Shown here piece after piece: positions 976 through 19,377 of a stretch of 64,000 nt of DNA (position 1 is its first letter; each line of letters begins with the position of its first letter). The stretch spans positions 1 through 64,000 of the forward strand of contig JALMLS010000275.1 in the NCBI GenBank assembly GCA_038496445.1. The letters are read 5' to 3'. A program made the position numbers and the translations under genes. The notes under the pieces are model-generated. The model did not search any database, was not told where the DNA came from, and saw only the letters and a program-made list of their open reading frames with translations. Origin of the DNA: Trichosphaerium sp. ATCC 40318. Lineage: Eukaryota > Protista > Tubulinea.

Positions 976-1369
976 AACTTGGTAGAGTATACCACAAAAC
1001 CAAGTGTATTATACTGTGTAAAAACTGTTCTAAAAATAAAAACACATTTATTAATACATCTTTTTCAGGGCTGAAACTCAACAAGGCATTTTTGGACAAT
1101 GCCTAGGCATTTTCATCAAATAATGCCTTATTTTTTACAAAAATGCCTAGTTTTTGCCTCATTCAAAAAGGCAAATACAGGGCAATGCCTTATTTTTTGC
1201 TCCAAAAATGCCTTATATTTGATGAAAAATGCTTGCATCTGGTACACAAGATTGCAATGGTTTTGCCTGCATATTTTAAGGAATTATGCCTTCAAATTAA
1301 AGCATAACTCATGCATCAATGCTTTATTTTGAAGGCAAAAACATAGCTTAGTGTACACAATAATGCTTT

Positions 1370-1710
1370 ATATAAAAAAGCATGATAACTAAGTAAATGC
1401 CTTTATAAAAAAGGTATGTCAACTACTCAAATGCCTTTATATAAAAGGCATAACAACTACTTAAATGCTTTGATATAAAAGGTACAACAACTACTCAAAT
1501 GCTTTTAAAAAAAAGGTATGACAACTACTCAAATGCCTTTATATAAGAGGTACGACAACTACTCAAATGCCTTTTAAAAACATGCACAATAACTATCCAA
1601 ATGCCACTTAAAGCAAGGCACAACAACATTCTAAATGCCTTCAAAAAGAACGTATAATAACACAACAAATGCTTTATAAAAAAGGTATAATAACCTTGTT
1701 AATGCCTCAA
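1370..1710 (+). repeat. Subterminal tandem array of ~28-30-bp units (AAAAGGTAYRACAACTACTCAAATGCCTTT)
   Basis: About 11 degenerate head-to-tail copies visible; such arrays are typical of CACTA subterminal regions. Confidence 0.85.
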
Positions 1711-1806
1711 AAGAAACGTGTTAACAATAAAAAACAATTTATTACAAAACTCTAACAAATATGCTTTAACCACTAGTAGTGCTCATCGTCTATCCAAAAA
1801 ATTGTG

Positions 1807-4081
1807 TTAGCGTGTAAATTCAATATAGCCATCAGCTTCCATTACATTCAAGGCTTCAATGGTCATTTTATTGAGCTGAGCGTCAACTAAAGAAAGTAAG
1901 AAACAGATTTTTTGTAACCAATTAAACATACATTCAATGAAGTGCATGCGCAATGAAGCACCATTTGCTAGTACCATTTTTTTAAAAAATGTTTTAAGAG
2001 AGGACTTGCTCAACTGTTTCTTTTTGTTTGCAGCAAGGTGAGTAATAATGTTATATGTGCGATTCTATGTCAAAAGTAAATGTTCACTTGTGTGAATGGA
2101 AAAACAATGTACCCATTTAAAATCTGCGACTATAGAGTGGATGTAGCGCCCCATAATTTCTCCACTGTGTTTAATGTCTCCCAAAAAACATGGTGCTTTA
2201 ACTACACGAACTTCAAGACTGTCAATACCTGGCACAAGTTGCCGATAATCAATTACAGATGCTGTAAAATGCAAAATTTGTTCAACAGCAACGTAAGAAC
2301 CTATACAGTATTCAATATCAAACAAAAGAGCTGCCTTACAAAAAACAAAAATAGCTTCATCTTTCACAGCCACAATAGAAAACCACGAACTATAAAAAGA
2401 CGTTAAACAAAACAATTTAAAAATCCACCTACATGTTTCCTATACAATCATCAACTATGATTGCAGGGTCAATGACACGTTGTTCTCCATCACCAATAAC
2501 AAACAGCACCAAAGCAAACAAGAAATTTGTAGTGTAGTCTTCTGTCTAAAATAATAATAAGAGAATAAAAAACCAAATTTTATTGTGTACCAAGGGCTTC
2601 ATATCAGATAACGCACGATTCAAACCAACAATTTTGTGAGGAAAGATTGAAGTTTTTGATCTTACTTACATTAGTTTGTTAAGTATGATACTAACTGTGG
2701 TACTTTGCGTTCAAACTATCAATATAGCACTTCATTTGATTTCCATTGGGAGCACCATTAGAAGAATATAACCACACAAAATCGCTAAAGTGAAACTCTA
2801 AACCGTAACAAGACACTTTGTCTTGGAAAAATAATTTTTTTTGTTCCACAGACACAGCTAAACAAGCATTAGCATTTTACAACAGCTGATGTGCGTACAA
2901 CTGGCTGGTCTCACAACATCACGCTGTGGAGACGGTGGTAAAGACGGCGGTGGAGATGGTGGCAAAGACGGTGATAAATCAAGCCCTGATAAACTTGCGC
3001 TGTCTACAAAACCAGGAGATGTAGGTGGCGTGCAATCTATATTTAAGTGTTAACTAATAACAATGTATCTATTTTTTACCTTTGTTGCTTTGCACACTAG
3101 CTATCAGTTGGTCATACATGTCAACATGGTTCAAATTGTTGTTTTGTTTTGCAACGTATGCAGCGCTTAAATAAATAGTCAGGGAAAAAACTGCCAATTC
3201 TGATTTACGATGTACATGTGCGATTCTGCTTCAATGTAATTAAAGCGCTTTAATGCTATAGCAGCGTATTGGTTGTGGTGGTCATGAACCTGAGTCGGCG
3301 AGTATGTGTTCCAAATCTTATTAAACTAAACAGATATTAACAACCACAAAACAAAACAAAGTGTACAAATCGTCTAAACATCATAATTGTTTTTTCTGTT
3401 ACGTCATGTGGAAAGGAATAGTTGAAAAAATCATCTTCAACAACAGACTTGCAAATCTCCCCTACAAAAAAACATTACGGAGTAACTCCGGAGTGGTTTA
3501 TACGCACAAGCACCATCTGCACTAACATCTGGAATAGCCATTTTTGTTTTGTTTAAAATAAGTACAACACCAGCCTTGCATTCCCATAGAAATGTTTTGT
3601 GGCGGACAATAATAATACTGCGGACGCATTCAAACGGAATTGCATTTGCAAATTTGCTTACATTCCACAATGAAGCTAGTTCTGTGTTCAAAATGTGCAA
3701 TTTTTCTGCTGACTCAACAGCACCATTGCTCAACAAAAGCGCTATGCCTTTGGCAATTGCAAACGCCTATCTCAAAATCAAATTACATTGTTTGCTTTCT
3801 AGAAAATTCAGCTTACCTTGGCTTTTGGCGTTATTACCACATTGTCGGGCGTTGTTGTCACAGAATTTGCTAGTGCTTCCTCTAACTTTGCAATTTTTTC
3901 TTTTTGCTCAGTTATTATTTGCTGCACTGCTACCATGTCATTACGCAAAAGCCTAACAAGTAAGTTGGTCCAAGTTCAAACTCAGAATTATATCGTACTT
4001 CATAAAAGCCAGTACACCATTATTCACAGTGGTAGTATTGGATTGCTTGAGTCTTTTTGGGTTCGGAGGCAAGTCGGACAT
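1807..4081 (-). CDS. Transposon-borne multi-exon gene: coiled coil, OTU-like cysteine protease, Pro-rich linker, BAH-like domain, possible C-terminal winged helix (at least one lesion)
   Basis: MSDLPPNPKRLK start; MAIPDVSADGACAY (OTU DGxC-like); NNLNHVDMY (His box); SLPPSP repeats; GLEFHFSDFVWL..CYIDSL..CWFE..LFVIGDGEQRVIDPAIIVDDC (BAH pattern); in-frame TGA at 2604-2606. Confidence 0.6.
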
Positions 4082-4124
4082 GTTCGGAGACGTTGGATGA
4101 TGTATAAATTTTACTAATTTTGAC

Positions 4125-7100
4125 TCATTGTGAAATAACATGTTGGTAATAGTTAATAAGATAGATGCCGTCATCAGACGTTTTATACAATTGTGCTGGT
4201 TTGTACAGCATGCTCAAAGGTACACAAGCCATACTGTTTTGAGGTTCAACGCTATTCACAAAAAAATGAACAATAGTGCCAAAAGAATCTGATAGTTACA
4301 CGTACATAATCAAGTCGCTCACTTTGTCATAGCGCCTATGATCTAAAGATTTATAGTACCTAAGGGTTTTTTAGTGAAATATCTCAGATAAAATAGCTAC
4401 ATACTTTCCAAATACCAAAACAACAGATTTGTCTATAACACTTTGATATATTGCGTCAGTTTTAATGTAAATGCACTTTCTTTTTGTCTCTCTTTGAGCT
4501 AAGCGCCAAGTTTTAAACACTGTTTGAGTGGATGCTGATAGTTTCCAAGCACCATCAAGTGACTTGACAGTATTGAACAAAGCAAATTTGCCACAAAGAA
4601 TGTGTTTTGCGAGATATGGCAAAGTTGCATCTACACACAACTTTTGTTGATAAGATAAAGTGCTCGTTTTCTTTAAATACTCTAATAATCCAATTAAACG
4701 AGTCAAATAACATATCAAGCTTACTTAAGGACCATTTTGTTTGTTTTCGTTTATAAAAAGCTGGAGTAGAAACAATTGCATGTGTTTTATTGTTGTTTTG
4801 AATTTTCAAAGACAAGCACACCTCGTCAAACTTTCCATTGTAAGAAAGCAACAACCATGGAATCTCTTTGCTTCCAATATCCCTACATAAATTGTCAATG
4901 TACAAATTAAACAAGTACACTCAATACTGTATCTTATCATGATTTTTAGATGAGGCCTTCCAACTTCTAATGGTGGCATGCTTTGACTCACAAGCATACG
5001 TGCTTAAAAACAAGTAACCATTTCAAACATTAAAATGTACTTACCTAAAGTGTTTAAATACTCCGTACTTTCTACACATGTACTCATAATGATACGGCAC
5101 ATGGAAGTTTATTGTATTGGTGTTCAAATCTAAAACCAATGTGAGTGTTGTTAAATGTACTAAGTTCACGAATACCAGGAAAGCAAGTTCTGATTTTAAA
5201 CAATAGTCGCTTATAGTGGTCTGTCAACAGCTTTACTTGTTCTTCGTACAAATAATTTTTTTGTGTCAGTACTATATAAAACAACAATTCTTTCCTAAAG
5301 AGGGAAAAAAGTCAACACGTCTTGTTTGTTACACGTTACATACCACATTGTCATCAATTGCTTTGGTAATAGTTTACGAAATACCAAAGTAGACATTTGA
5401 AAAAAAGAACGCAAATCGACTCCATCCCAACTGTCTTTTATCAAGCACCCCTTGTCATTCCATACTGGTTTCATTCTAGCAAAGCAACATCAGCAATCAC
5501 ACGCTAACCAACTTTACTCACTTTCCCAAGCTTTTGTTTTGCTTTTTAATATAGCTGATTCTTCTTTGTATTTGTCGCCTGAAAAGGTTAGCTCCTTTCA
5601 ATTGTTCCATGCGATTTAATGTTTCAATAACAACCGTTTTGCCAATGCCCAATATAATATTGTGAAAAGGACAGTACGGCGAATCCAGAAAATAATCAAA
5701 GTTACATTTTAACAATTTACTAAAAGGAGACAAAAAGTCAGATAGCAAATTGTGTATTATTGAACTCACCTGCGCATTAACACTGTAACAAAGCTTAATG
5801 TGTTTAGAATATTGGTACTTTGACAGGTCATGCAAAGTTTCTCGTGTATTACGATATGCCGCAATCAGTGCGTTTGAGTCTTTGGTGTATTTAAAAGAAT
5901 CTTTTTCTGTGCGACATATTCTACACGGATGATAAGATGTAGGTGACATCATTGCTATTGATTGAATTAATAATCATTGATAAAATACCCAAAAACAGCT
6001 CACATATAAGTCAATTTGATCCTTGACTATCACCAAGTATCTTTGTCAATCGCAAATAAACTGTGTAGTACTATTTTCCATATGTAAGTGGAAAAAATAC
6101 ACTAAAATTGAAGTGAGTACCTTTTTCTCGCTTTTGATATAGCATCTCATTCCATTGTAGACTTTTAACAAATCTTGTACGACATGCTCCAATAAATCTT
6201 CTTCGTGATGACACTTCGGCAATACAGCTATCATCATTTTACCTGTGGTGCTAGCACTATTGGGCAAGTTCCAAACCACAAGGTACAATGGACCAAAGCT
6301 GTCCTTTTTATCATACGTGAAATCATCTTTGCTTATGTATGCTATTTGAATGTGAGTGTACAACTGTTAAAATAGTAAAACATTACCTGGAAGCAAAATG
6401 ACATTTTCTTTATCGGCTTGATACTTGTCAATGACATCACTAAAGACGTGTTTGATATGAGTTCCCGTTTCTGGTCCTTGAAGCACCTTTTTGACTTTTG
6501 TAGAGCCATCATCTTTTACAATGGATATTGTTGGTGACGTCGATGGTATACATTCTGCTATGCTATCTCGTGACGGCAAGTCGTATAGTGTTCTTTTAAT
6601 ATGCTCTGAAGGAGCAAAAAAAGGTATTGAGATGGTGGAAATTATTGCATTTGTTTTTTTAGCTCGCTTAGTAACTGCTATGCGTTTAGGTTTGAAGCTG
6701 GGTAAAAACTATGCCTGATTAATATAAAATAAAATGGCTAGCATCTTTATTGTACCTTTGTCTTAACGGTGTTAAACAAGGTAACCATAGAACACTTTAT
6801 TAATCCTGCAACAGCAAATTAAAAAATAGTACAACGTTAAAAAACACATACCTTCATCAGGTACACCAAATGAAGGTAGTACGGCATTGAATAACTTAAG
6901 GATTTTTTCACACAAGACTTTTGATAGCTTGTACTCCATTTTTAAAGCAAATAGCAGGTATCCAAACATCTCTTCTGAAGTTGCATCGGCTAATTTTGTC
7001 TTTGGCGCAAATGGTGGTGGAGTATTTTCTTGATTCAAAGCGCTTACATCTTTGCACATTAATGTACCACAATTTGTCCAATAAAAAACTTCATACCTAT

Positions 7101-7552
7101 TTCTTCATCATTCTTTGATTGTGAAGAGCAATCAGGATCTTCAATATTATAAAACATCTCTATATTATCGTAATCACCGTCACTACGCCAATCGTCAAAG
7201 AGTTCATCCTCGCTACTACTGGTACAATCATCAGAGCTATTCCAATCGCCCATATCACTATTTTGGTCACTTATTTCGTCCTCGTCTATGCTTTTTATGG
7301 TATTTTTTGCTGTAGTTGAGTAATATTCTATTTTCATGTCGTTTTCAGTGGCACCACCGCCTACATACAATAAAATGGTAAAAATTAGATGCTGTAGAAT
7401 AATGCGATAAAAATAGCACCTGAAAAATTGCTATGCCCATTACCAAGCGCTGCTGAATGATGCTTGTACATTTGTAGATGTCTAAACAAATAATATTTGC
7501 GATCATAAAAACGTTTACACTCTGCACAAAACACAACGTCACTGTTTGCCAT
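4125..7552 (-). CDS. EnSpm/CMC (Tnp2-like) DDE transposase with N-terminal C2H2 zinc finger; mildly degenerate
   Basis: MANSDVVFCAECKRFYDRKYYLFRHLQMYKHH; acidic tract; SKDDFTYDKKDSFGPLYLVVWNLP; LGDSQG; HPCRIC; CPFHNIILGIGK; DLRSFFQ..LP..W; CESKHATIR; in-frame TGA at 6011-6013 and 4921-4923. Confidence 0.85.
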
Positions 7553-7672
7553 CCGCAAGTCAGACTTTAGTTAATTGAAACTGTATTTGGTATGTTTAAG
7601 TTGTTTATTGCTTATACAATTTGCTTAACCTACATAAGAACAATTAATCAGTTACACCAATAGTAATGTACA

Positions 7673-10469
7673 TCAAACGCACAAGTTGTTGTCACCTAAT
7701 TTATCTTTCAAGTCGTCAGTGATTGAAAACACTGTTTTAAGTGTTGGAGATACTGTGAAATGCATTAAAGTGGAAAGAAAAACCAGTTTGATGTACCGTT
7801 TAGAATGTGGTTCATTTTTTTCCAGTGCAAAGTTTCTATTTTGATTATGTCTTCATCAGATAACGCAAGTTTGGAGCTTTGATCAGTGAAGACATCCAAA
7901 AATTGAGGACGAGGGTCACAACAAACACAATTAAGAACAAATCTGTTCTTTTTGCTTGTTGAACGTTTAACCTGTTGCTTGTTCGTTCTAAACACCACCA
8001 ATGGTTGTTCACCGTAATAAACCAAGCCATGTACATACCATCTCGTTATAATTCCAAGTTGTCGGTTGCCTACACTGATGAGCTGTGGTAAACCAATGTT
8101 TGTAAACATGCAATTGAGTGACGGGTAATTGCTAGTGATATTGTGGTGTACAAGATTGCATGGTGTAATAAAAAAAGTACAGCCTTCGTCTAAACCTGTA
8201 TTTGTTTCTTGTAGGCTTAATGATTTGTCAATCAAGGCCTTTAGGTTTTTACGCGAAATCTCTGTCGCAGTCGCATAAACAAGTGCCCAACCATCATAAA
8301 AAAACCTTAAAAAAAAACATTAACAATCACATTGTTGGAATTGGCTGCACTCTTTAGCAAACGTCTCTTTTTTAACCACCACTTTCAATCCCAATTCTTT
8401 GTGACCTTGAAAAGTACACCCTTTTTTTGCAATTAATCCCATTTCATTTAAACTAAAGGGACTCAGTCAAAACATTTAATAAAACACAAGCACCCGTCAA
8501 TGTTATATATTACTTTTGTTCCAGGTTGAATTTTAGTTGGTCCGTCTCCCGGTTTGGGCAATACAAATGGTGAGGAATGAAGCATATGTAAATTGGTTCG
8601 ACATCTTGGGTTGCGTGGGTCCACAATTAGAGAATGCGACATTGTTTGTTTGTGGTGACAATAATCATCACTGCTCAAGCATGATAGAAATATTTGTTTA
8701 TCAATTGCCAGGGAATTGATGTTAAGTTCAGCGTTTATAAAATGCCTAACTATTAGAAAGAAGTATCTAACTCCTTTTGGCACTTTAACTGAAACAGAGT
8801 GTCTTACTACTCCTGTTTAGTGCCCAAACAAAATTTGTACCACCGGTTTGAATAAAGTCAGTGTCTATTTGAAGTTTTGGTTAAGTTTGACGCTGTTAAA
8901 TGCGACGTACTTGTCTTTATAACAATGTTCTTGGTAGGTTTTTTAGCATTTTTCCGAGTTCTTATCATAAAACCAAAGCATGTGATTCCGCAAACGTTAT
9001 GAAGTTGCCCTTTATCCCCATCCATGTGCATGGTTAAATGAGATTCTCCTTGTGACCATTCCTTCAAATAATAAGTACCATTTTAAAACTAGTAACTTAC
9101 TTACTTTGAGTTCTACAACAATGTTCTTTGCATCGCCATTAAAATATTTTGCTGTCGTTGTCATATTGTCGTGTGCTTTAAAAATAGGCGCCAACAACGC
9201 CTTTCTCTCCGCATCCAATTTGATTGGTACTTTAATCTCTGAATGGCCTTGTAACTTTTCTAATACCAAAAAAAGTGAACAATAGAGATTAATACAACCG
9301 CGTATACCTGAAAATGGAGTTACAGAAGTGACAGTGCCGTACATCTGACTTTTATAGTTTCTCATTATGTTTGCTTCCCATAAATCACCTGGCTTAGACC
9401 AATACTACTAAGATTAGCTCGACACTTGTATTGTTCTTCCACGCACATTGTATTTGAGTTCATTGGTTGCAGTTACAGCAAATTGTTTACAAGCCTCGAG
9501 CAAACCTCCAAATAAACAACACTTGGACAGCTGTATGTTGTGAACAGACTTTTGCCAAGGTATGTTCAACAACATACATTTTTTTTGTGTACAACATTCT
9601 GTTAAAACAGTTTTTACTTCCGGTTCATTATCTAAACAACCTTTTTGTTTTACTACCAACAAAATTAGTACAAACAACTAACAATTAATGTAATGCCACT
9701 GCTTACCTGGATCTGCATAGTCTGAAGAAGGTGGCATGGTACCGGCAAGGCAATTAAACGCTGTATTCAAATCCTCATTGGAGAAAAACTTTTTTAAGGT
9801 ACGGCCACAACGTTTGTTATTTGGTTGTTTATTGGATTTTGTCGCTATAGATAAAAAACAATCACTAAAATGCCTTTCAAGTTCAGGTACCTAGCCTCTT
9901 CTTTTGTAGTTTAAAAGCCATGCGCACCAAGGCTGTACAAGATATGTTGTGGTGTTTGCCTTTCAGTCTTGCTTTGATAAACTATAAGCTCATTAAATCA
10001 AAGTATGGTACCTCATTGATATTTCGCCACATTCGTCGTGTTGGCTGTTCTACATTTGGAGGCATGATGTTACCAACAATCCACTCTGTATGTGTATCAG
10101 ACAAACACTTCAATTTTATTGTAACATCTGTAGTCCATGACTCTGTTATCACTCCAGCTCCTTCATTGACGATGGCAGCTTCCAAAACAGCCTCCAGATT
10201 GGAAAAAGCCTTTTGAATATCATTTTGTGCTTTGTTTCTTGTTAGCGCATCTGAATTTACAGCCTGAAATATGAGTTATGACTACTGGTTATAAATTTTG
10301 TTACGTGCCTGTGTGTTATTCTTGATGTCATTCACATGGCATGTCACACTCATTTTTGTGAGTCTCTTTTTATCACGTGTTTGTGACACGTTAGAATTTG
10401 TTCTCTTTCTACAGATTTATTAGTAACAAATCAAAAGCCTGTGTACCTCTTAGCTCTATTATGATTCAT
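7673..10469 (-). CDS. Transposon-borne AlkB-like 2OG-Fe(II) dioxygenase fused to a probable SRA-like domain
   Basis: Spliced EWSQGESHLTMHMDGD..VCGITCFGFMIR..IVIKTNTDFIQTG..GVVRHSV..GVRYFFLIVR gives HxD...H...R..R; then PGTKVIYNIDGLNEMGLIAKKGCTFQGHKELGLKVVVKK..GWALVYATATEISRKNLKALIDKS; one frameshift near 8817. Confidence 0.65.
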
Positions 10470-11109
10470 TATGGTGTTGTTGTTTAAGTGTTGCCTTAAC
10501 CTAAATCAATCTAAGCAAAACGTGGTACGCCATTCAACAAAACAACAAAAAAAAAAATTGGAAAAACCATTTTAATGTACCAACAAGATAATTCACTGCA
10601 AGAATAACGACGCCGTTTGAAGTGTATTTCACGGAAGGTGAAAAAAAAAAATTGGAAAAACACATTTTTTTGTTTTTAATGGGTTTGAGCGCTGTTTCTA
10701 TGTGTAAAAATCGTAATGATGCCAAAAAAAAAAAAAAAACTGAAAGGTTTTTTTGACAATATGTCAACGGGCTCAAAATAACAAGAAATTAGCAATTGGT
10801 GCGACTGTACCTAAAATACACGCAAAATCTTCTTTTATGTCTTTGGTTCGTTGTAAATACTAAATACCGGTTAGGAAAATATGAGATGAACAGGATATGC
10901 TTTTAAATTATGTATGATGCCGTCTAATAAAGGAAAAATCAAGGTACAGAAAAGAATTTATGGTGGCAAATAGAAGACATAACGTACGTTTAGCAACTTG
11001 AGCTATCAACATGTTTATTTACCTTTCTCAAAAGATTCAAATCCAGTACCATTTGAAAAAAAAGCTCAAGGAAAAAATAAAGCACGCTTTAATTCAAACA
11101 TCCACAGCT

Positions 11110-12076
11110 TTATTAACAGGCATTCGGCAGCACGTTTTGTTCATTCACACTTGTAAGTCACAAGTATTCCATCCACAAAGCTTAATCATAAAAAACACAT
11201 TAGTCTGGTGTTCACTTTACATACGTTCTAATATAATTTTTAAGTCGCCTGTGGCAATTTTCTACCTAATTAGTTAATATATGAGTTGGTGGATAGGTAC
11301 AAAGGTGAGCGTACTAAAACAGGCGACATTACAAAAAATTGCTCAATTTGATAATCTACGCCAGAAAGACTTACTCCAGGTACTTTACAGGATCGCATTC
11401 AACAGATATGTATCGGAAATGGTTCAGCGGATGGTCGACCAGCCGTATGCACATAACACCTGAACTTTCACGTTTTTGAACCACTTTGCTGTTTTAAAAC
11501 TAGTCATTTAATTATATCAAACAAAAGTAGCGTTTGCACTAACATATTCTCACAGCAACTACGAAGCACACAAGAGTTCTCAAAAAGGTCAATAGCGCAT
11601 AGCAAGGATGGTTATAGTATTTACAGTTTACACGCTATAACTAAATCAGTGGCGTTGGTAGACTACGAGTACGCGCGCTAGCATCTTGAACATTGCCCAA
11701 GATTAATCTGTTGTGTAATAGGATAATGTCCAAATGACAACAACCAGCAAGGGGAATGCACTTTGTGGCCTCCTTTGATAGTTAACTATAATTTACTGCT
11801 TTTCTCCTTAGCCGTCTGTTTAGGTACTATAATGAACAACCCAGACAAGGAAACCACTTGTAACATCAATCAACTATGTTGGTTCATTGTTGCGCCAAAA
11901 CCTGCGCCAGGTACGCTACCTTCATCTCATGTACATACTAATGGCTGATAAAGTGTATTCGCTTTGAGTGGCTCGACACAGAATGGTACGAAACAGCTCC
12001 ATGACATGTTATACTAACAGATTAAAGGCCTAACGATGCTTTGATCTTCTTTGATGGTTCAGCTAAACATAAAAGG
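11110..12076 (+). pseudogene. Captured fragment of a CUB-domain protein gene
   Basis: GTIMNNPDKETTCNINQLCWFIVAP..IKCIRFEWLDTE..PNDALIFFDGS fits the CUB consensus; introns retained; 5' boundary approximate. Confidence 0.55.
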
Positions 12077-12438
12077 TAAGTACGACAATTTTTGCGTGAA
12101 AAAAAAACCCACAAAAATTAGTTTTAGCCAAAAGAAAGTACTGTAAGTCGTTGTTCTTATTGTAGCGTTTGCTCAGCGACAATATTGGATTTAGTACTCC
12201 TTAAAGATCCAGGAGCTGTATGTAATGATGGATCACAAGCCGGGTAAAATTTAACACGTACAAATTTCGTTGTCAAATACTCGATCAACTGTATTTCGCG
12301 ATAGTCCACGTGTAATCACAAGTATGTTTCATTCGCATTATCTAAGCTCAATTATTTAATTTTCGATTCTGTCGCACCTTGTACGCTTCACAAATCCTTC
12401 AACATAACACAAGCTTTCTGACTTTTTTTTCTCCATAG

Positions 12439-13830
12439 CTGAAGAAGAAGCAATTGCAAATCAAGGCGCTCTATCTGTAACAACAAAAGCATCCATTTTT
12501 GGGCCTGACACACGGAAAAAGAGTTTGACTGGCGATGGAGAAGCTCAATCTATCACTCTAGTACCACAAACAGCAGATGGTACAGTGTTTATAAATCAAG
12601 GCTTCTTGCTAATAAAAAAAATAGGTGAAGCGATTTCATTGCAAGAAAAACACTTAAACGTACTTATTACAGGACCAAAAGGTGTATCTACAGAGGTATT
12701 CGATAACGGTGATGACTCATGGAACGTTGAGTTTGAGGTACTTCAAAATTAATCAAACAGTCTCTACTCATCTAACAATATTGCAAAGGCACCAAAGACA
12801 GAAGGCGCATACAATCTTGTTTGCACATATCAAGGAAAGCCTTTATACGATCCAATACCTCTTGCTATTGGACCATCCAACCTACACCATCAGACAAGTT
12901 GTATTGTTTAATTGAAGGAACCAATCCCATTCATGATATTGATCGCGTTGCGTACACGATCACATTCAAAGAAGAAGTAAAGGAAGAAGATATTTCAGTA
13001 ACACTAGCAGCAGGTTCGTTCAATTTTTCTTTTTTTATTTGCTGAATACTCGTGTTGTTTACATGTTCCCTTAGGCGACATTAAAGTCATTGTTGAGCTT
13101 TATCCTATTGAAGCAGAAGACTTGGATGATGGCGTTGCAGTGTACGATGTAGAGTTTGAACTAAAAGGAGAAGGATCGTACACCATGGATTTTGTAGTTC
13201 GCGGTGAAGCAGTTGATGCATCTTCAATTAAGTTCATCACCAAAGGTTACAAAGAAAACGGCGAAGAGTAAGTAATCCACGAAATTAACAAGTACTAAGA
13301 GTATTGTAGAGCAAAACCTGGAGTAGTAACTCCAGAGGTTGATGTTAAAGCAGAAGAAACAGCAGATGAAGAATCTGCTCCTGCTGAAGAAAACGTAGCA
13401 GAGGAAGAAGATGAGGAAGAAAAACGTGCAGAAGCAGAAGCTGAAGCTGCACGTAAAGCAAAAGAAGAGGAAGATCAGAAGATTGCTGAGGAAGAAGCTG
13501 CACGTAAAGCTGCAGAAGACGAAGCTGCACGTAAGGCTGCAGAAGAAGAGGCTGCAACAAAAGCCGCTGAGGAAGAAGCTGCACAAAAAGCAGAGCAAGA
13601 ACGCATTGCAAAGATAGGAAGTAAGAAATGGCCTTGTTTTAGTGTCACGTTCAATAACAAAAACGGTACGATTCCTCAACAGATTCCTCCTTTTTAATAC
13701 TTTTTAAGGCGATGTTGTTAAAGTTCCAAAGCAATCAATATGAACTAGTGTCGATGGTCCTCTTTCACCTGAAACATGTGTATTTGAGAATGGTAATGGG
13801 ACATATGATGTTGAGTGGTGTCCAAAAGTA
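12439..13830 (+). pseudogene. Captured filamin/Ig-repeat gene fragment with EEEAARKAAE charged repeat
   Basis: VLITGPKG..EVFDNGDDSWNVEFE..PKTEGAYNLVCTYQGKPL; PETCVFENGNGTYDVEWCPK; E/A/K repeat at 13370-13616; resembles the repeats of the host gene at 32139-36679. Confidence 0.75.
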
Positions 13831-14919
13831 CGATCTTGTGGATTTTTCTGTTTTGCTCTTATCTAATGATAAGTACCACGACAGCGTTTTTTTACCGGCA
13901 TTAGGTCCTACATTGAACAAGGATCAAATCCAAAAACTTGTTTTGTACCTACAGGGCAAGTGCTTTAAATCTTTAATATCACCACTGACTTAGCGTAGGC
14001 GTAGGTTATTGCTTTGATAATACACTATAGTAAGACGCTAACACCCAATTCGCGTACGATGCTCAAAAGTTTTTTTTGTCACGTGATTAACTCGTCAAAA
14101 ATAAATAGCTAAGGCAGCAAAATTATATCTGCTGCAATATCCGATTTAAAAGATAATTACGGACTACGTGAAGCAACAGATGTTTTGTTCACTGGAAGTA
14201 GTGCTGGAGGCATTGGTAACAAAAAAAAGCAGTTGAACATACGCAAGAGGTCTTATATTTTGTCTGACTGAAACTTTAAGGCCTTCTTCCAACGCTGATA
14301 GAGTGGCTGAAATGCTTCCTACCAGTAAAGTTACTGTACTTGGTAAGTATCAAGACAAAAGTGGAATAATGCTAACACCTACTTCTAACAATCAACATTT
14401 GATTCCAGATGGTTCTTAGATTTCAAGCCTTACAAGGATCTTGTAAAGATGTTCCTGATTGTACAAAACAACAGGGTATATCTCGAGGATACAAGATATG
14501 GGAGCCTATCGTTAACAAAGGTAAACGAAAACAAGTACTTTTTTTCCTTTCCTAGTTTACATAAGGATGTTCTGCTTCAATGCCACCTGGTAAGCTATAT
14601 CAATGTACTCTTGGATACCACGCTTTCCCATTCATTAAAACTGATACTTTCATATTCCAATACCAGTACGTAATGTTACTTATCAGGGATTTGTGTGGTT
14701 AATATATTACTAATGTTGTTGGTGCTAAGATGGGTCATGATGACATTCATGAAGCCCCAAAATCTGGAGTGGAATTAATATATGCTCAAAAAGCAGCGAA
14801 AAACTTGATTGAAACATTTAGAAGCAGTGGAGCCAAAGGTGTCTTCAGGTAAACGTTTCTGTGATTGCTACTGTTCGAAAAACTAAACGTGTTTGTATGC
14901 ATTTTTTTAACTCACATTC

Positions 14920-15455
14920 AACGAAAAGGAAGTTCCTGAACTCAAAACCGCTCACATACAGGGATGTACACAACAAGGAGATTGGCAGGATAAGAGGTGA
15001 TCGCCCCACATGGACCATTAGAGGTAAGAAAGAGCTCCAATGGCATTAGAGCTCAAAAATGCCCTGTTCTACACTTACATCATTAACAAATGAGCTAACC
15101 GGTTATTACGCAGACGCTCAACCTAAGCCTCAGAGCTTTAAAGTGCCAGAAAACGATAAATGCGACGGCCTCAAGCACAAGAGGTCGCAACCCACACTTT
15201 CAGAGTTTCTCAGTGCTAAGAAACAGCGCCTATTGAAGGCAGCCGAAAAGAAGAAAGCAACAGCGGCGCTGCAAGTGTTGGAGGTACGCCACAGTGTCAG
15301 TCAGAGGTTGTTATCAACTCTAACCAATGTGCACACATGATCACACATCTATATTTGATCGCCTACCGCGGTCGTTAGTTGTTATGTTAGTGCTCACGAT
15401 GACCCCCTGTTTAGATCTAAACAATCAATTACTTATTTTTTTATTGAATAAATTC
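14920..15455 (+). other. GC-richer unidentified insert in a PAE intron, possibly a retroelement 3' fragment
   Basis: Intronless ~130-codon reading with one stop, QPTLSEFL motif, AATAAA near 15447; composition differs from the flanks. Confidence 0.3.
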
Positions 15456-15839
15456 ATTTATTTTTTTATTTTTAGAGCACGATGTAAGGCTTAGCAGTTG
15501 GTATCAGAAGGGGCGAGGCATGAGCATTAATACACTAGCATTTTGTGCCATTTCACAGGGTGTCAGCGCTTGCAAGCCTGTTATAAAGTACGTTGATGGC
15601 TAACACACCACATTCACAAAGCAATACTAATTTAGCGTACTAGTTTTTAAACATGCTCCAAAGCGAGTTGCCGGATAACATGCAAGATCACACCATAGGA
15701 ATGCTCTCAAGCCAAGAAAGCAAGCAAGCTTTCGCATATTTGCTGGAAGGTTTCCTAAACTGACAATTCGCCCTTTTGCACAGTACACATTCTCTGACAA
15801 GCTACAATATTTGTTTGTTGTAACATTACCAGTTGTTTA

Positions 15840-17060
15840 GATCCACGGCCTTCTTTCCTGATATTTTGATGAACGCTGGGTATGTAGAATTACAAGACAT
15901 TAACAGCAATGTAATTGTTCTCACAGAGTCCAAGTTTCACAAGGAGTGCAGCTCCTTCCTAAAGTACACTTTTTGTTTAAATTAAAATGTTTTATTCAGG
16001 TGAAGCCGCTACCTGTGCTACAGACTTTGCCTGCCTATCTCATTGGGGTCAGAACGATGCAGTAAAATCACAACAAAGCGGTACAGCTCAGAAGTCCTGC
16101 TAGGGACTTAAACGTTGATTGTGCTGCGTATTCTTAGACGCTATGGTTCAAGTTGCACAACAATGGTGACAACTCCAGGCTCTGATAATAGGTCGGGTAC
16201 GTATTATATTAGTACTACATTTGCCATTACAGTTTAAGTACATGATTGTTAACAACAAGTGCTAGAAACCATTCAGGTTGTTGGGCACATCTTCAATCGA
16301 TTCAAAATCTATCTACGGTGTGTCATGTATTATATAGAGTGCTGACAATTTGTTTGTACACATGCGTCTGGATATTGCTTTCAAAACTTCAAAGCGTTTT
16401 TGTGTGGGCAAACAAGCTTTCAAACAGCAATGAATATTAGATGACTGCTTTGGTATTGCGGAAGTGCCTGTAGGTTCCTTTTTTTTTTGTGCGAACAACC
16501 GTTATCGCTTACTTGTTGCTGATCTGCACCTCCTCTCTTTAGACAGTTATAAAAGGTACAGCAATTGGCCTCAAAAGACTTACAACATACAAAGGAAAGG
16601 TAACCAAACAAACCTTTTCAAGTCGTATTTAAGAATTCCAAGTTGAAGACTGACTTTTTACACAATAGCAATACAGAGTTTTGCCTACTTTGACAGAAAG
16701 AGAAGCACGTGATGCACTTTGCCACGATATCGCAAGAGGATCAGCCAGAACGCTCAAGTAAGAGAATAAGACCTTTTTTAGTCAATAGTATTCTACCTTT
16801 GACCGCCTATAGAAAATCGCTATTGGTAAAGGTGGTATACTACACTACGATAGCTGTGTATCATTCTGCGATGCTAGGTATCCAAAACAACGTTCAATCA
16901 AGGTGAGGAAACAGAGGTTACTTACAATTGAGCGTACCCGGATTAGCAGAAAAAAGACCATCTCTACTTTATGGCGACATACAAGATATAAAATTTTGCA
17001 CGTGTGGTACCCTTAGATTCTTTGTTGGATTTGACGATTATGTGATCATTTTTTTAATTA
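15840..17060 (+). pseudogene. Unidentified degraded multi-exon cargo fragment
   Basis: Regular GT..AG intron-like spacing with broken reading frames; no family recognised. Confidence 0.3.
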
Positions 17061-17370
17061 ATTGTCTGTCGTTTGCATTGTTAAGGCCATAGATTATGAC
17101 CATTGTAATGTAAGTGACAAACTGGCAATTATTACGACTAAATGCCTCAAAAAATTCCAGCAGTGCCAAATGTTTGAAATGCCTTTAAAAAATGGCGTTA
17201 TGCCGGTGTGTTGTGCCTACCAAAAATAGACATTGCCTGTGTTGATAAATGCCTCAAAAATAAACGGCATTGCCATATGCAAATGCATAGTTTTTGCCAT
17301 CTTGTGCCCAATAGTATAAAAATGCCTACTTTTTTAGGGCATTGCCCGGCTTAGTTTCAGCCCTGTTTTT

Positions 17371-18342: not shown

Positions 18343-19377
18343 CAGGGCTGAAACTCAACAAGGCATTTTTGGACAATGCCTAGGCATTTTCATCAAATAA
18401 TGCCTTATTTTTTACAAAAATGCCTAATTTTTGCCTCATTCAAAAAGGCAAATACAGGGCAATGCCTTATTTTTTGCTCCAAAAATGCCTCATATTTGAT
18501 GAAAAATGCTTGCATCTGGTACACAAGATTGCAATGGTTTTGCTTGCATATTTTAAGGAATTATGCCTTCAAATTAGGGCATAACTCATGCATCAATGCC
18601 TTATTTTGAAGGCAAAAAGAAAGCATTGTCATAGTCTACAGTGCCTAATAAACCAGGGTATTTTCAGGTAATAACACAACTATTTATTTTATAATACAGT
18701 ACACATACAATACACAAAACTCCTAAGTCCACATTTGAAAAAACCTTAAAGAAAATATGAGATGGTGTAGAAAAAAAAAAAAAAAACTTACCTTGTAGTG
18801 TTAGAATTCCGCGGTCCTGGAAATATCGCGGAGTTCACTCCTACTACTGTTGTAGGTGAAATAGGGTGCTGCGGTTCGTTTGGGGGTAGTTTCGTCTAAT
18901 TTCATAAATTACTAAGATTGCTAGGTGCCTATCTATATAAAACGTCAGTAGGTGATGTGAAAAAAAAAGTGGAAAAGTTGTTTGACTGTTACTTACCTTA
19001 AAACACTTCCTTAAAGTGATCAGTCCTATGATATAGTATAGGCAATGCCTTATATATGAATTAAAATACAAGGCATATATTGCTTAAAAAAATAAGGCAT
19101 AATAAAGGCATAAAGTACTTGCAATACAGGGCATTACTTGATTTTATGCAATGCCAAAAAATGCAATACAAGGCATTACCTGATTTTATGCAATGCCAAA
19201 AGATGCCCAAAAATGCCTGGTATTAATGCCTTTTTGATGAAAGCATTGCCTTTTTGTAAAAATGCCTTACTTTATTGGGCATTGCCAAATGCAAATGCCT
19301 TGATTTTGCCATCTAATGCCAAATGTTAGGAATATGCATCATTTTTTAAGGCAATGCCTAGCTGAGTTTCAGCCCTG
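18343..19377. mobile_element. Full-length 1035-bp MITE, copy 2
   Basis: 15-bp perfect TIR CAGGGCTGAAACTCA; first ~275 bp nearly identical to 1066-1340; no matching TSD. Confidence 0.9.

Follow-up and report, generated by a model that had tools for sequence, protein, structure and literature searches.

The 64,000-nucleotide (nt) stretch of DNA analyzed here (positions 1 to 64,000 of contig JALMLS010000275.1, assembly GCA_038496445.1, from the amoebozoan Trichosphaerium sp. ATCC 40318), which we will refer to as "the window", carries a cut-and-paste DNA transposon and, within it, a minus-strand multi-exon gene (~10416-7768) belonging to a dispersed gene family. Judging from its conserved residues, the most likely identity of the encoded protein is a classical Fe(II)/2-oxoglutarate (2OG) dioxygenase, an assignment that we favor with some reserve. 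The reading as a whole, for which the balance tips only slightly in favor, is that this part of the window holds the catalytic core of a transposon cargo gene, and that the putative dioxygenase would oppose silencing by the host. An earlier inspection of the same letters (the original prediction) had described here an AlkB-type H-x-D...H...R..R core, hidden by introns and one frameshift; its claims are taken up below together with the results that bear on them.

Gene family, introns and invariant residues

At least 15 dispersed copies of the gene are present on different contigs of the 70-Mb genome, and they fall into at least three subfamilies that are 25-35% identical. Subfamily A includes at least eight close paralogs (contigs C411, C445, C351, C26, C176, C352, C188 and C380), with C411 as the closest relative of the window copy; subfamily B is found on C86 and C108 (two copies), and subfamily C at C445:9470 and on C92 and C5. 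Three more divergent matches to the core of exon E4 (C49:310121-310243, C5:895149-895322 and C365:14342-14515, E 6e-10 to 1e-6) sit in open frames of 126-195 amino acids (aa); the longest of these, the 195-aa frame on C49, might contain a larger part of the core within a single exon. The gene copies are under purifying selection, with dN/dS values of 0.08-0.21 in seven pairs of 133-404 codons (0.19 for the window copy against C411), obtained from Nei-Gojobori counts per exon that were then summed. For some near-identical pairs dS is only 0.04-0.05, which indicates recent copying. Outside this genome, the sole relative retrieved by HMMER with the E4 alignment among 1.84 billion representatives was an 82-aa fragment on a 992-bp contig of the JGI metagenome 3300044452, evidently an exon from another eukaryote. 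This fragment reads F-I-W-A-L-H-G ... V-H ... V-I-R-H.

The exons, which we will refer to as up1 and E1 to E5 (Table 1), are separated by GT-AG introns of 40-50 nt. Splicing is backed by these borders and by a conservation at the protein level that is confined to the exons in at least eight paralogs, and intron positions and phases are common to different subfamilies; the phase-1 intron between E3 and E4, for example, joins IVIKT to N-TDFIQTG. As far as comparison of the copies can tell, this is a real intron-split gene family and goes beyond a chance motif, in agreement with the original prediction that the core is divided by introns. The ATG at 9365, within E1, is internal and not a start, because conservation extends upstream of it in every copy. 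The window itself has a G+C content of ~36-40% and contains short open reading frames (ORFs) only, and the eukaryotic assembly to which its contig belongs amounts to 70.3 Mb in 642 contigs. The published Trichosphaerium draft genome comprises 70.9 Mb with 37.7% G+C and 8.7 introns per gene, mean exon and intron lengths being 154 bp and 75 nt (PMC10521059).

The peptides on which the original prediction was built lie on the minus strand where it had placed them (HMD, the distal His and two Arg, Table 1), and E3, which contains the H-x-D, is intact in the window copy. The alignment of E3 (nine sequences from three subfamilies, down to 29% identity to the window copy) contains nine invariant columns (H12, D14, G15, G25, I26, G30, F31, K44 and I46), and that of the E4 core, with the metagenome fragment included, contains six (F, W, A, L, the distal H and the last R). 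Four of these 15 columns are the H and D of H-x-D, the distal H and the last Arg. Since the four catalytic positions are found among so few invariant columns at such low identity between subfamilies, the H-x-D...H...R signal is, by this comparison, more than chance. The expectation that homologs would conserve H-x-D and the distal His was in this sense borne out, both being invariant across the three subfamilies.

Identity of the encoded protein

Classical 2OG-Fe dioxygenases share an HXD signature and a conserved arginine in strand 8 (PMC2938197). At the level of the motif, the family agrees with this superfamily description: HXD, distal His and late Arg occur in canonical order and are invariant in the three subfamilies and the metagenome fragment. 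The last Arg follows the distal His at a distance of 18-20 residues, which is +18 in subfamily A, as in the genome's own AlkB homologs, and +19/+20 in C and B. Regarding the R..R pair of the original prediction, subfamily A does possess it as R-x6-R, and only its last Arg is invariant; subfamilies B and C have Gly or Ser in place of the first, and a Lys or Arg 1-3 residues before the replaced position.

Among the clades compared (AlkB, P4H-type and 2OG-FeII_Oxy), AlkB appears to be the nearest, with membership in it not established. Seven canonical AlkB genes of this genome were combined into the AlkB profile, and hhalign aligned the E3 profile to it HxD on HxD with a score of 21.4 (P 0.0024), pairing W/Y-x2-G-x6-H-x-D with Y-x2-G-x6-H-x-D and keeping the flanking aromatic and Gly residues at identical spacing. 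In 120 column shuffles of E3 the score stayed below this value, with a maximum of 18.7 and a median of 9.6, and reversal of the alignment gave 10.5. With the P4H-type and 2OG-FeII_Oxy sets of the same genome, the best local alignments centered on HxD or the distal His at scores of ~10, equivalent to background; E4 against the 2OG-FeII_Oxy set paired distal His with distal His, again at a background score. Under a permissive setting, E4 fell on columns 144-184 of the AlkB profile, next to columns 98-149 covered by E3, with His on His and last Arg on last Arg (P 0.73).

The family might on these grounds be a true, very divergent member of AlkB, one that would remove methyl groups by oxidation from N-methylated bases (6mA, 1mA, 3mC) in DNA or RNA. 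AlkB provided the only one of the three family profiles to score above background with the HxD exon, and the spacings resemble those of the genome's own AlkB homologs (aromatic at -10, Gly at -7 and strand Gly at +18/19 with respect to HxD, followed by R-H-(S/A)-V and by the last Arg at the distance given above); furthermore, a fungal fusion of AlkB with a divergent SRA domain has been described (PMC4738411). We nonetheless hold true membership to be rather unlikely: the AlkB model PF13532, searched in six frames over the whole genome at E up to 10, finds 41 places, none of them at the locus (C213) or its paralogs; the R-x5-R of AlkB (R-x-N-L-T-F-R) is x6 in subfamily A and lacks its first Arg in B and C; the Asn of the AlkB (N)-x-Y-x2-G motif is absent from the family, which has K-E-W/Y instead; and the comparisons of E4 and E2 with AlkB are not significant. 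The label "AlkB-type" in the original prediction finds some backing in the order of the motif, its spacing and the weak E3 match, and none in PF13532 or R-x5-R.

The 41 places matched by PF13532 represent an unusually large canonical AlkB repertoire for a 70-Mb genome. Many of them are long intron-free frames, several with stops, and this repertoire may itself be repeat-borne.

Returning to the broader assignment as a classical Fe(II)/2-oxoglutarate dioxygenase, a number of results weigh against it. H-x-D...H...R is a short motif, and the only positive score, that of E3 with AlkB, is modest, at an hhalign probability of 12%; profile-profile comparisons of E4 and E2 with AlkB gave nothing significant (P 0.73 for E4). 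No exon matched Pfam, NCBIfam or PHROGs models, even at E 10 (window ORFs and paralog exons for Pfam, ten exon pieces for the other two). The two models proposed as a check in the original prediction, PF13532 (2OG-FeII_Oxy_2) and PF12851 (Tet_JBP), gave no support, matching no exon or paralog; in whole-genome scans PF12851 gave a single weak match, on C19 (E 0.115), and PF13640 and PF03171 matched other genes, never the family. Searched against the sequences of the PDB, the E3 and E4 profiles retrieved nothing relevant, a ribosomal protein eS8 at E 0.5 being a chance match. AlphaFold on E4 alone gave a pLDDT of 41, with low-confidence strands on RHSVEVMV and RYFSLIVRQF, and a four-chain co-fold of exon pieces from the C5 copy scored 0.00, which is no evidence either way. 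The splice sites, as well as the deletion described below, were read from the assembly and from sequence comparison only. Besides these, the E4 alignment had no match in a word-index protein search, no related locus was confirmed in viral and metagenome contigs, and ESM Atlas feature searches with two exons returned uninformative scores of ~0.8.

It is therefore conceivable, and we would not call it far-fetched even if we doubt it, that the gene encodes no dioxygenase and instead specifies an accessory protein of the transposon with some other beta-rich fold, perhaps a new one, in which the motif is coincidental or kept for metal or DNA binding. The blank library searches, the profile signal in only one of the three core exons, the lack of a fold and the uninformative language-model neighbors are what such a protein would lead one to expect. 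Against it stand the catalytic identity of four of the 15 invariant columns, in canonical order and spacing, the E3 score above all of its shuffles, and the placement of E3 and E4 side by side, in collinear order, on the AlkB profile. The dioxygenase remains the identity we favor. Its substrate, as the original prediction had held, cannot be read from sequence.

The domain that follows the predicted core at the C-terminus was modeled by AlphaFold with a pLDDT of 66.8, dropping below 50 over residues 53-71 (19 residues), which derive from an intron, and amounting to 78-86 in the flanks. Foldseek retrieved nothing for it at E up to 0.001, and the best VIA-align Z was 4.7 (kinase N-lobes); the Z of 4.2 obtained with the SRA domain of ScoMcrA lies within the noise of such unrelated matches, and PF02182 (SRA) matches other genes and not this domain. 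A role as methyl-DNA reader is possible but unsupported.

Lesion of the window copy

E4 is a single frame in every paralog, running from TNFVWAL through a variable loop of 12-20 aa to GFGPGVVRHSV...VRYFSLIVRHF. The original prediction had required the removal of one base near 8817 in order to read through this exon in the window; the place was right and the lesion was wrong, since the window copy has lost 53 nt. The variable loop is lost with this deletion, as is G-F-G-P-G, and the resulting shift leaves the distal His and the two Arg out of frame with E3. The match of the family E4 profile to the window begins only at position 24 of the profile. Of the idea that introns and a frameshift conceal the core, the introns have proved real, and what breaks the window copy is the deletion.

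The window copy is, on the evidence of its reading frames, probably a pseudogene with at best a truncated product. For it to be functional, the assembly would have to be in error about the 53-nt gap, or the frame would have to be restored by a short additional intron. A GT...AG stretch of ~31 nt does span the TNFVWAL codons just upstream of the junction, its removal would join ...IQT-G to VVRHSV in frame, and all other examined exons of the window copy are open. Such a splice would, however, delete the F-x-W-A-L strand that is invariant across all subfamilies, and 31 nt is shorter than the introns seen in this gene and than the published mean (PMC10521059). We therefore give a functional window copy very little credence and retain its reading as a pseudogene.

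Damage is not restricted to this copy, as C351 has lost 22 nt at the start of E4, C176 carries a frameshift in the E4 tail, and E2 is interrupted by a stop in C188 and C380. The copies on C445 (~18.7-21.2 kb), C26 (~150.1-153.3 kb) and C352 (~25.3-28.5 kb), on the other hand, are open across all exons examined, and these intact copies, unlike the decayed one in the window, are suitable for biochemical or structural work.

Other observations concern the surroundings of the paralogs. An insertion of ~0.9 kb (~2128-3020) lies between E4 and the next exon of the C411 paralog and contains a short tandem repeat, in the translation of which HQGFLRKL recurs. Directly upstream of the subfamily-B genes on C86 and C108 (~1100-1700 of the oriented loci) there is a minisatellite-like repeat (VSYVNRVGY... 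in several frames), and the two C108 copies are inverted, ~8 kb apart.

Table 1. Features of the transposon and of its cargo gene, in window coordinates (TIR, terminal inverted repeat).
Feature	Position	Strand	Basis
Cut-and-paste DNA transposon carrying the gene, 16.3 kb	1066..17365		13-nt perfect TIR CAGGGCTGAAACT at 1066-1078, inverted copy ending at 17365; TTT on both flanks
Core exons of neighboring gene: DDFTYDKKDSFGP..NLP (D-D-F...N-L-P), C-R-I-C, D..CPFH....G	5521..6708	-	Conserved companion of the cargo gene (subfamilies A and C); motifs read by eye
Zinc-finger ORF with Met start, C-x2-C-x12-H-x5-H	7388..7552	-	Conserved next to the cargo gene (subfamilies A and C)
Exons of C-terminal domain (WALVYATATE...TPC; RQLGIITRWYVHG...CCDPRPQF); the ORF reads through an in-frame intron	7882..8304	-	Paralog conservation, predicted model
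Exon E5 (LNEMGLIA...TFQGH...GLKVVVKKE..AKE)	8350..8452	-	Paralog conservation
Exon E4, broken in the window copy: TNFVWAL (8838-8818) in one frame, VVRHSV...VRYFFLIVRHF and tail in another	8494..8864	-	Three-frame translations, profile, alignment
Distal His (8801-8799), subfamily-A Arg (8768-8766) and invariant last Arg (8747-8745), all out of the E3 frame	8745..8801	-	
TAA stop ending the frame that enters E4 from E3	8785..8787	-	Translation
Deletion junction, 53 nt missing with respect to C411 and 41-56 nt with respect to other copies	8814..8816	-	DNA alignment; three-frame translations of nine copies
GT-AG intron of 46 nt, phase 1	8865..8910	-	Position identical in subfamilies A and C
Exon E3: W/Y-x2-G-x6-H-x-D-G, then G-I-T-C-F-G-F strand; HMD at 9028-9020	8911..9061	-	Invariant residues, profile match
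Exon E2: helix (LL.P.I..H....NA), then strand ending ..VELK	9105..9259	-	Paralog conservation
Exon E1 (YWSKPGDLWEANIMR...TPFS)	9308..9404	-	Conservation in all copies; borders read from sequence
Exon up1 (LNIPW...LKYNVR), conserved L..C..FA helix	9441..9569	-	Paralog conservation
Upstream exons of the same gene: basic N-terminal stretch, then AIVNEG...NINEV exon	9985..10416	-	Protein-level conservation in paralogs

Transposon setting and relation to known systems

The element that carries the gene shows terminal inverted repeats, a target-site duplication and multiple dispersed copies, as is proper to a DNA transposon, and positions 2718-10218 of the window are collinear with copies on C26 and C188. 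Elements of ~1 kb at 1-975 and 18343-19377 of the window have the same 25-nt ends (CAGGGCTGAAACTCA...) as the 16.3-kb transposon and are probably non-autonomous derivatives; related copies, 90-98% identical, are found on C176, C352 and C188. Directly downstream of the cargo gene, on the same strand, lies a neighboring gene whose motifs, compared by eye with the description of C(2)C, resemble those of transposases of the CMC/EnSpm type (PMC12730594); PF02992, PF18758, Pfam in general and a word search were all blank for it. The zinc-finger ORF between both is probably the start, or first exon, of this transposase-like gene. At the C411 paralog, the transposase-like block has a relative orientation opposite to that in the window.

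The model of C5-cytosine DNA methyltransferases matches the host genome over several exons (C7:645518-646681 and C59:71478-71633), and genes with SRA domains lie on C547, C42, C91 and C615, so that the host probably has a 5-methylcytosine machinery, and silencing based on methylation is plausible. In such a host, an intact copy of the cargo gene would yield a nuclear protein whose double-stranded β-helix core would bind Fe(II) through the H-x-D of E3 and the distal His of E4, with 2-oxoglutarate anchored by the invariant Arg that closes the last strand. The protein may then oxidize the methyl group of a base in DNA, at the element or in its vicinity; the mark would thereby be removed or changed, keeping the transposase expressed. 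The same counter-silencing logic has been proposed for the TET/JBP genes borne by fungal transposons (PMC12730594).

This precedent raises the alternative of a TET/JBP-like dioxygenase acting on 5-methylcytosine (or thymine). TET/JBP proteins are the only nucleic-acid dioxygenases known to be carried by transposons, including EnSpm and Plavaka elements (PMC12730594), the methyltransferase and SRA genes of the host would suit such an enzyme, and the triad with its late Arg is compatible with it too. Given that PF12851 is silent on the family and that the exon profiles matched no TET structure in the PDB, we nevertheless judge this alternative quite improbable.

With more doubt than conviction, a further step may be taken, namely that a hitherto undescribed, sequence-orphan family of Fe(II)/2-oxoglutarate nucleic-acid dioxygenases was captured and amplified by CMC-type transposons in an amoebozoan, where it would act as a self-carried methylation eraser with an origin independent of fungal TET/JBP. 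Transposons with their own DNA-demethylating dioxygenase have so far been documented only in fungi, and only with TET/JBP. Should the protein be an active dioxygenase, this counter-silencing strategy would have arisen more than once and with a different enzyme lineage, and the family would constitute a new group of nucleic-acid-modifying enzymes without recognizable relatives.

Several known systems provide a frame for these proposals. With the AlkB family (E. coli AlkB, ALKBH1-8 and FTO), the gene family shares the succession of an aromatic-x2-G-x6-H-x-D motif, a Gly-containing strand, a strand with its loop, R-H-x-V and a final R ~18 residues on, besides the weak profile match of the HxD exon; and, as in the fungal AlkB-SAD/SRA fusion (PMC4738411), an additional C-terminal domain follows the core. 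Unlike AlkB members, it is not matched by PF13532, keeps neither R-x5-R nor the Asn of N-x-Y, and places its two His ~80-87 residues apart in subfamily A (57 in L002, an AlkB homolog of the same genome); unlike in the fungal fusion, its C-terminal domain is not recognized as SRA.

AlkB domains also occur embedded in the replicases of plant RNA viruses (Flexiviridae). The likeness here would lie in a mobile element equipped with its own base-demethylating dioxygenase (predicted, in the present case), presumably protecting its own nucleic acid. The viral domains are clear AlkB members within the polyprotein of an RNA virus, whereas in Trichosphaerium a DNA transposon carries a standalone nuclear gene, rich in introns, for which no homology to AlkB is detectable.

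The closest parallel is found in the TET/JBP genes encoded by fungal transposons, which have been described in Kyakuja/Dileera/Zisupton, EnSpm, Plavaka, hAT, Helitron and other elements (Kojima 2025, PMC12730594). The host is in our case an amoebozoan, Tet_JBP and other models are blind to the protein, and the enzyme family would be a different one or one diverged beyond recognition. As in the fungal elements, a cargo, here a putative dioxygenase, stands beside a transposase gene (transposase-like in the present case) of a cut-and-paste element, has multiplied with the element and has decayed in some copies; and the role proposed for the fungal genes, escape from methylation-based silencing, is the one that, by analogy, we propose for the amoebozoan gene.

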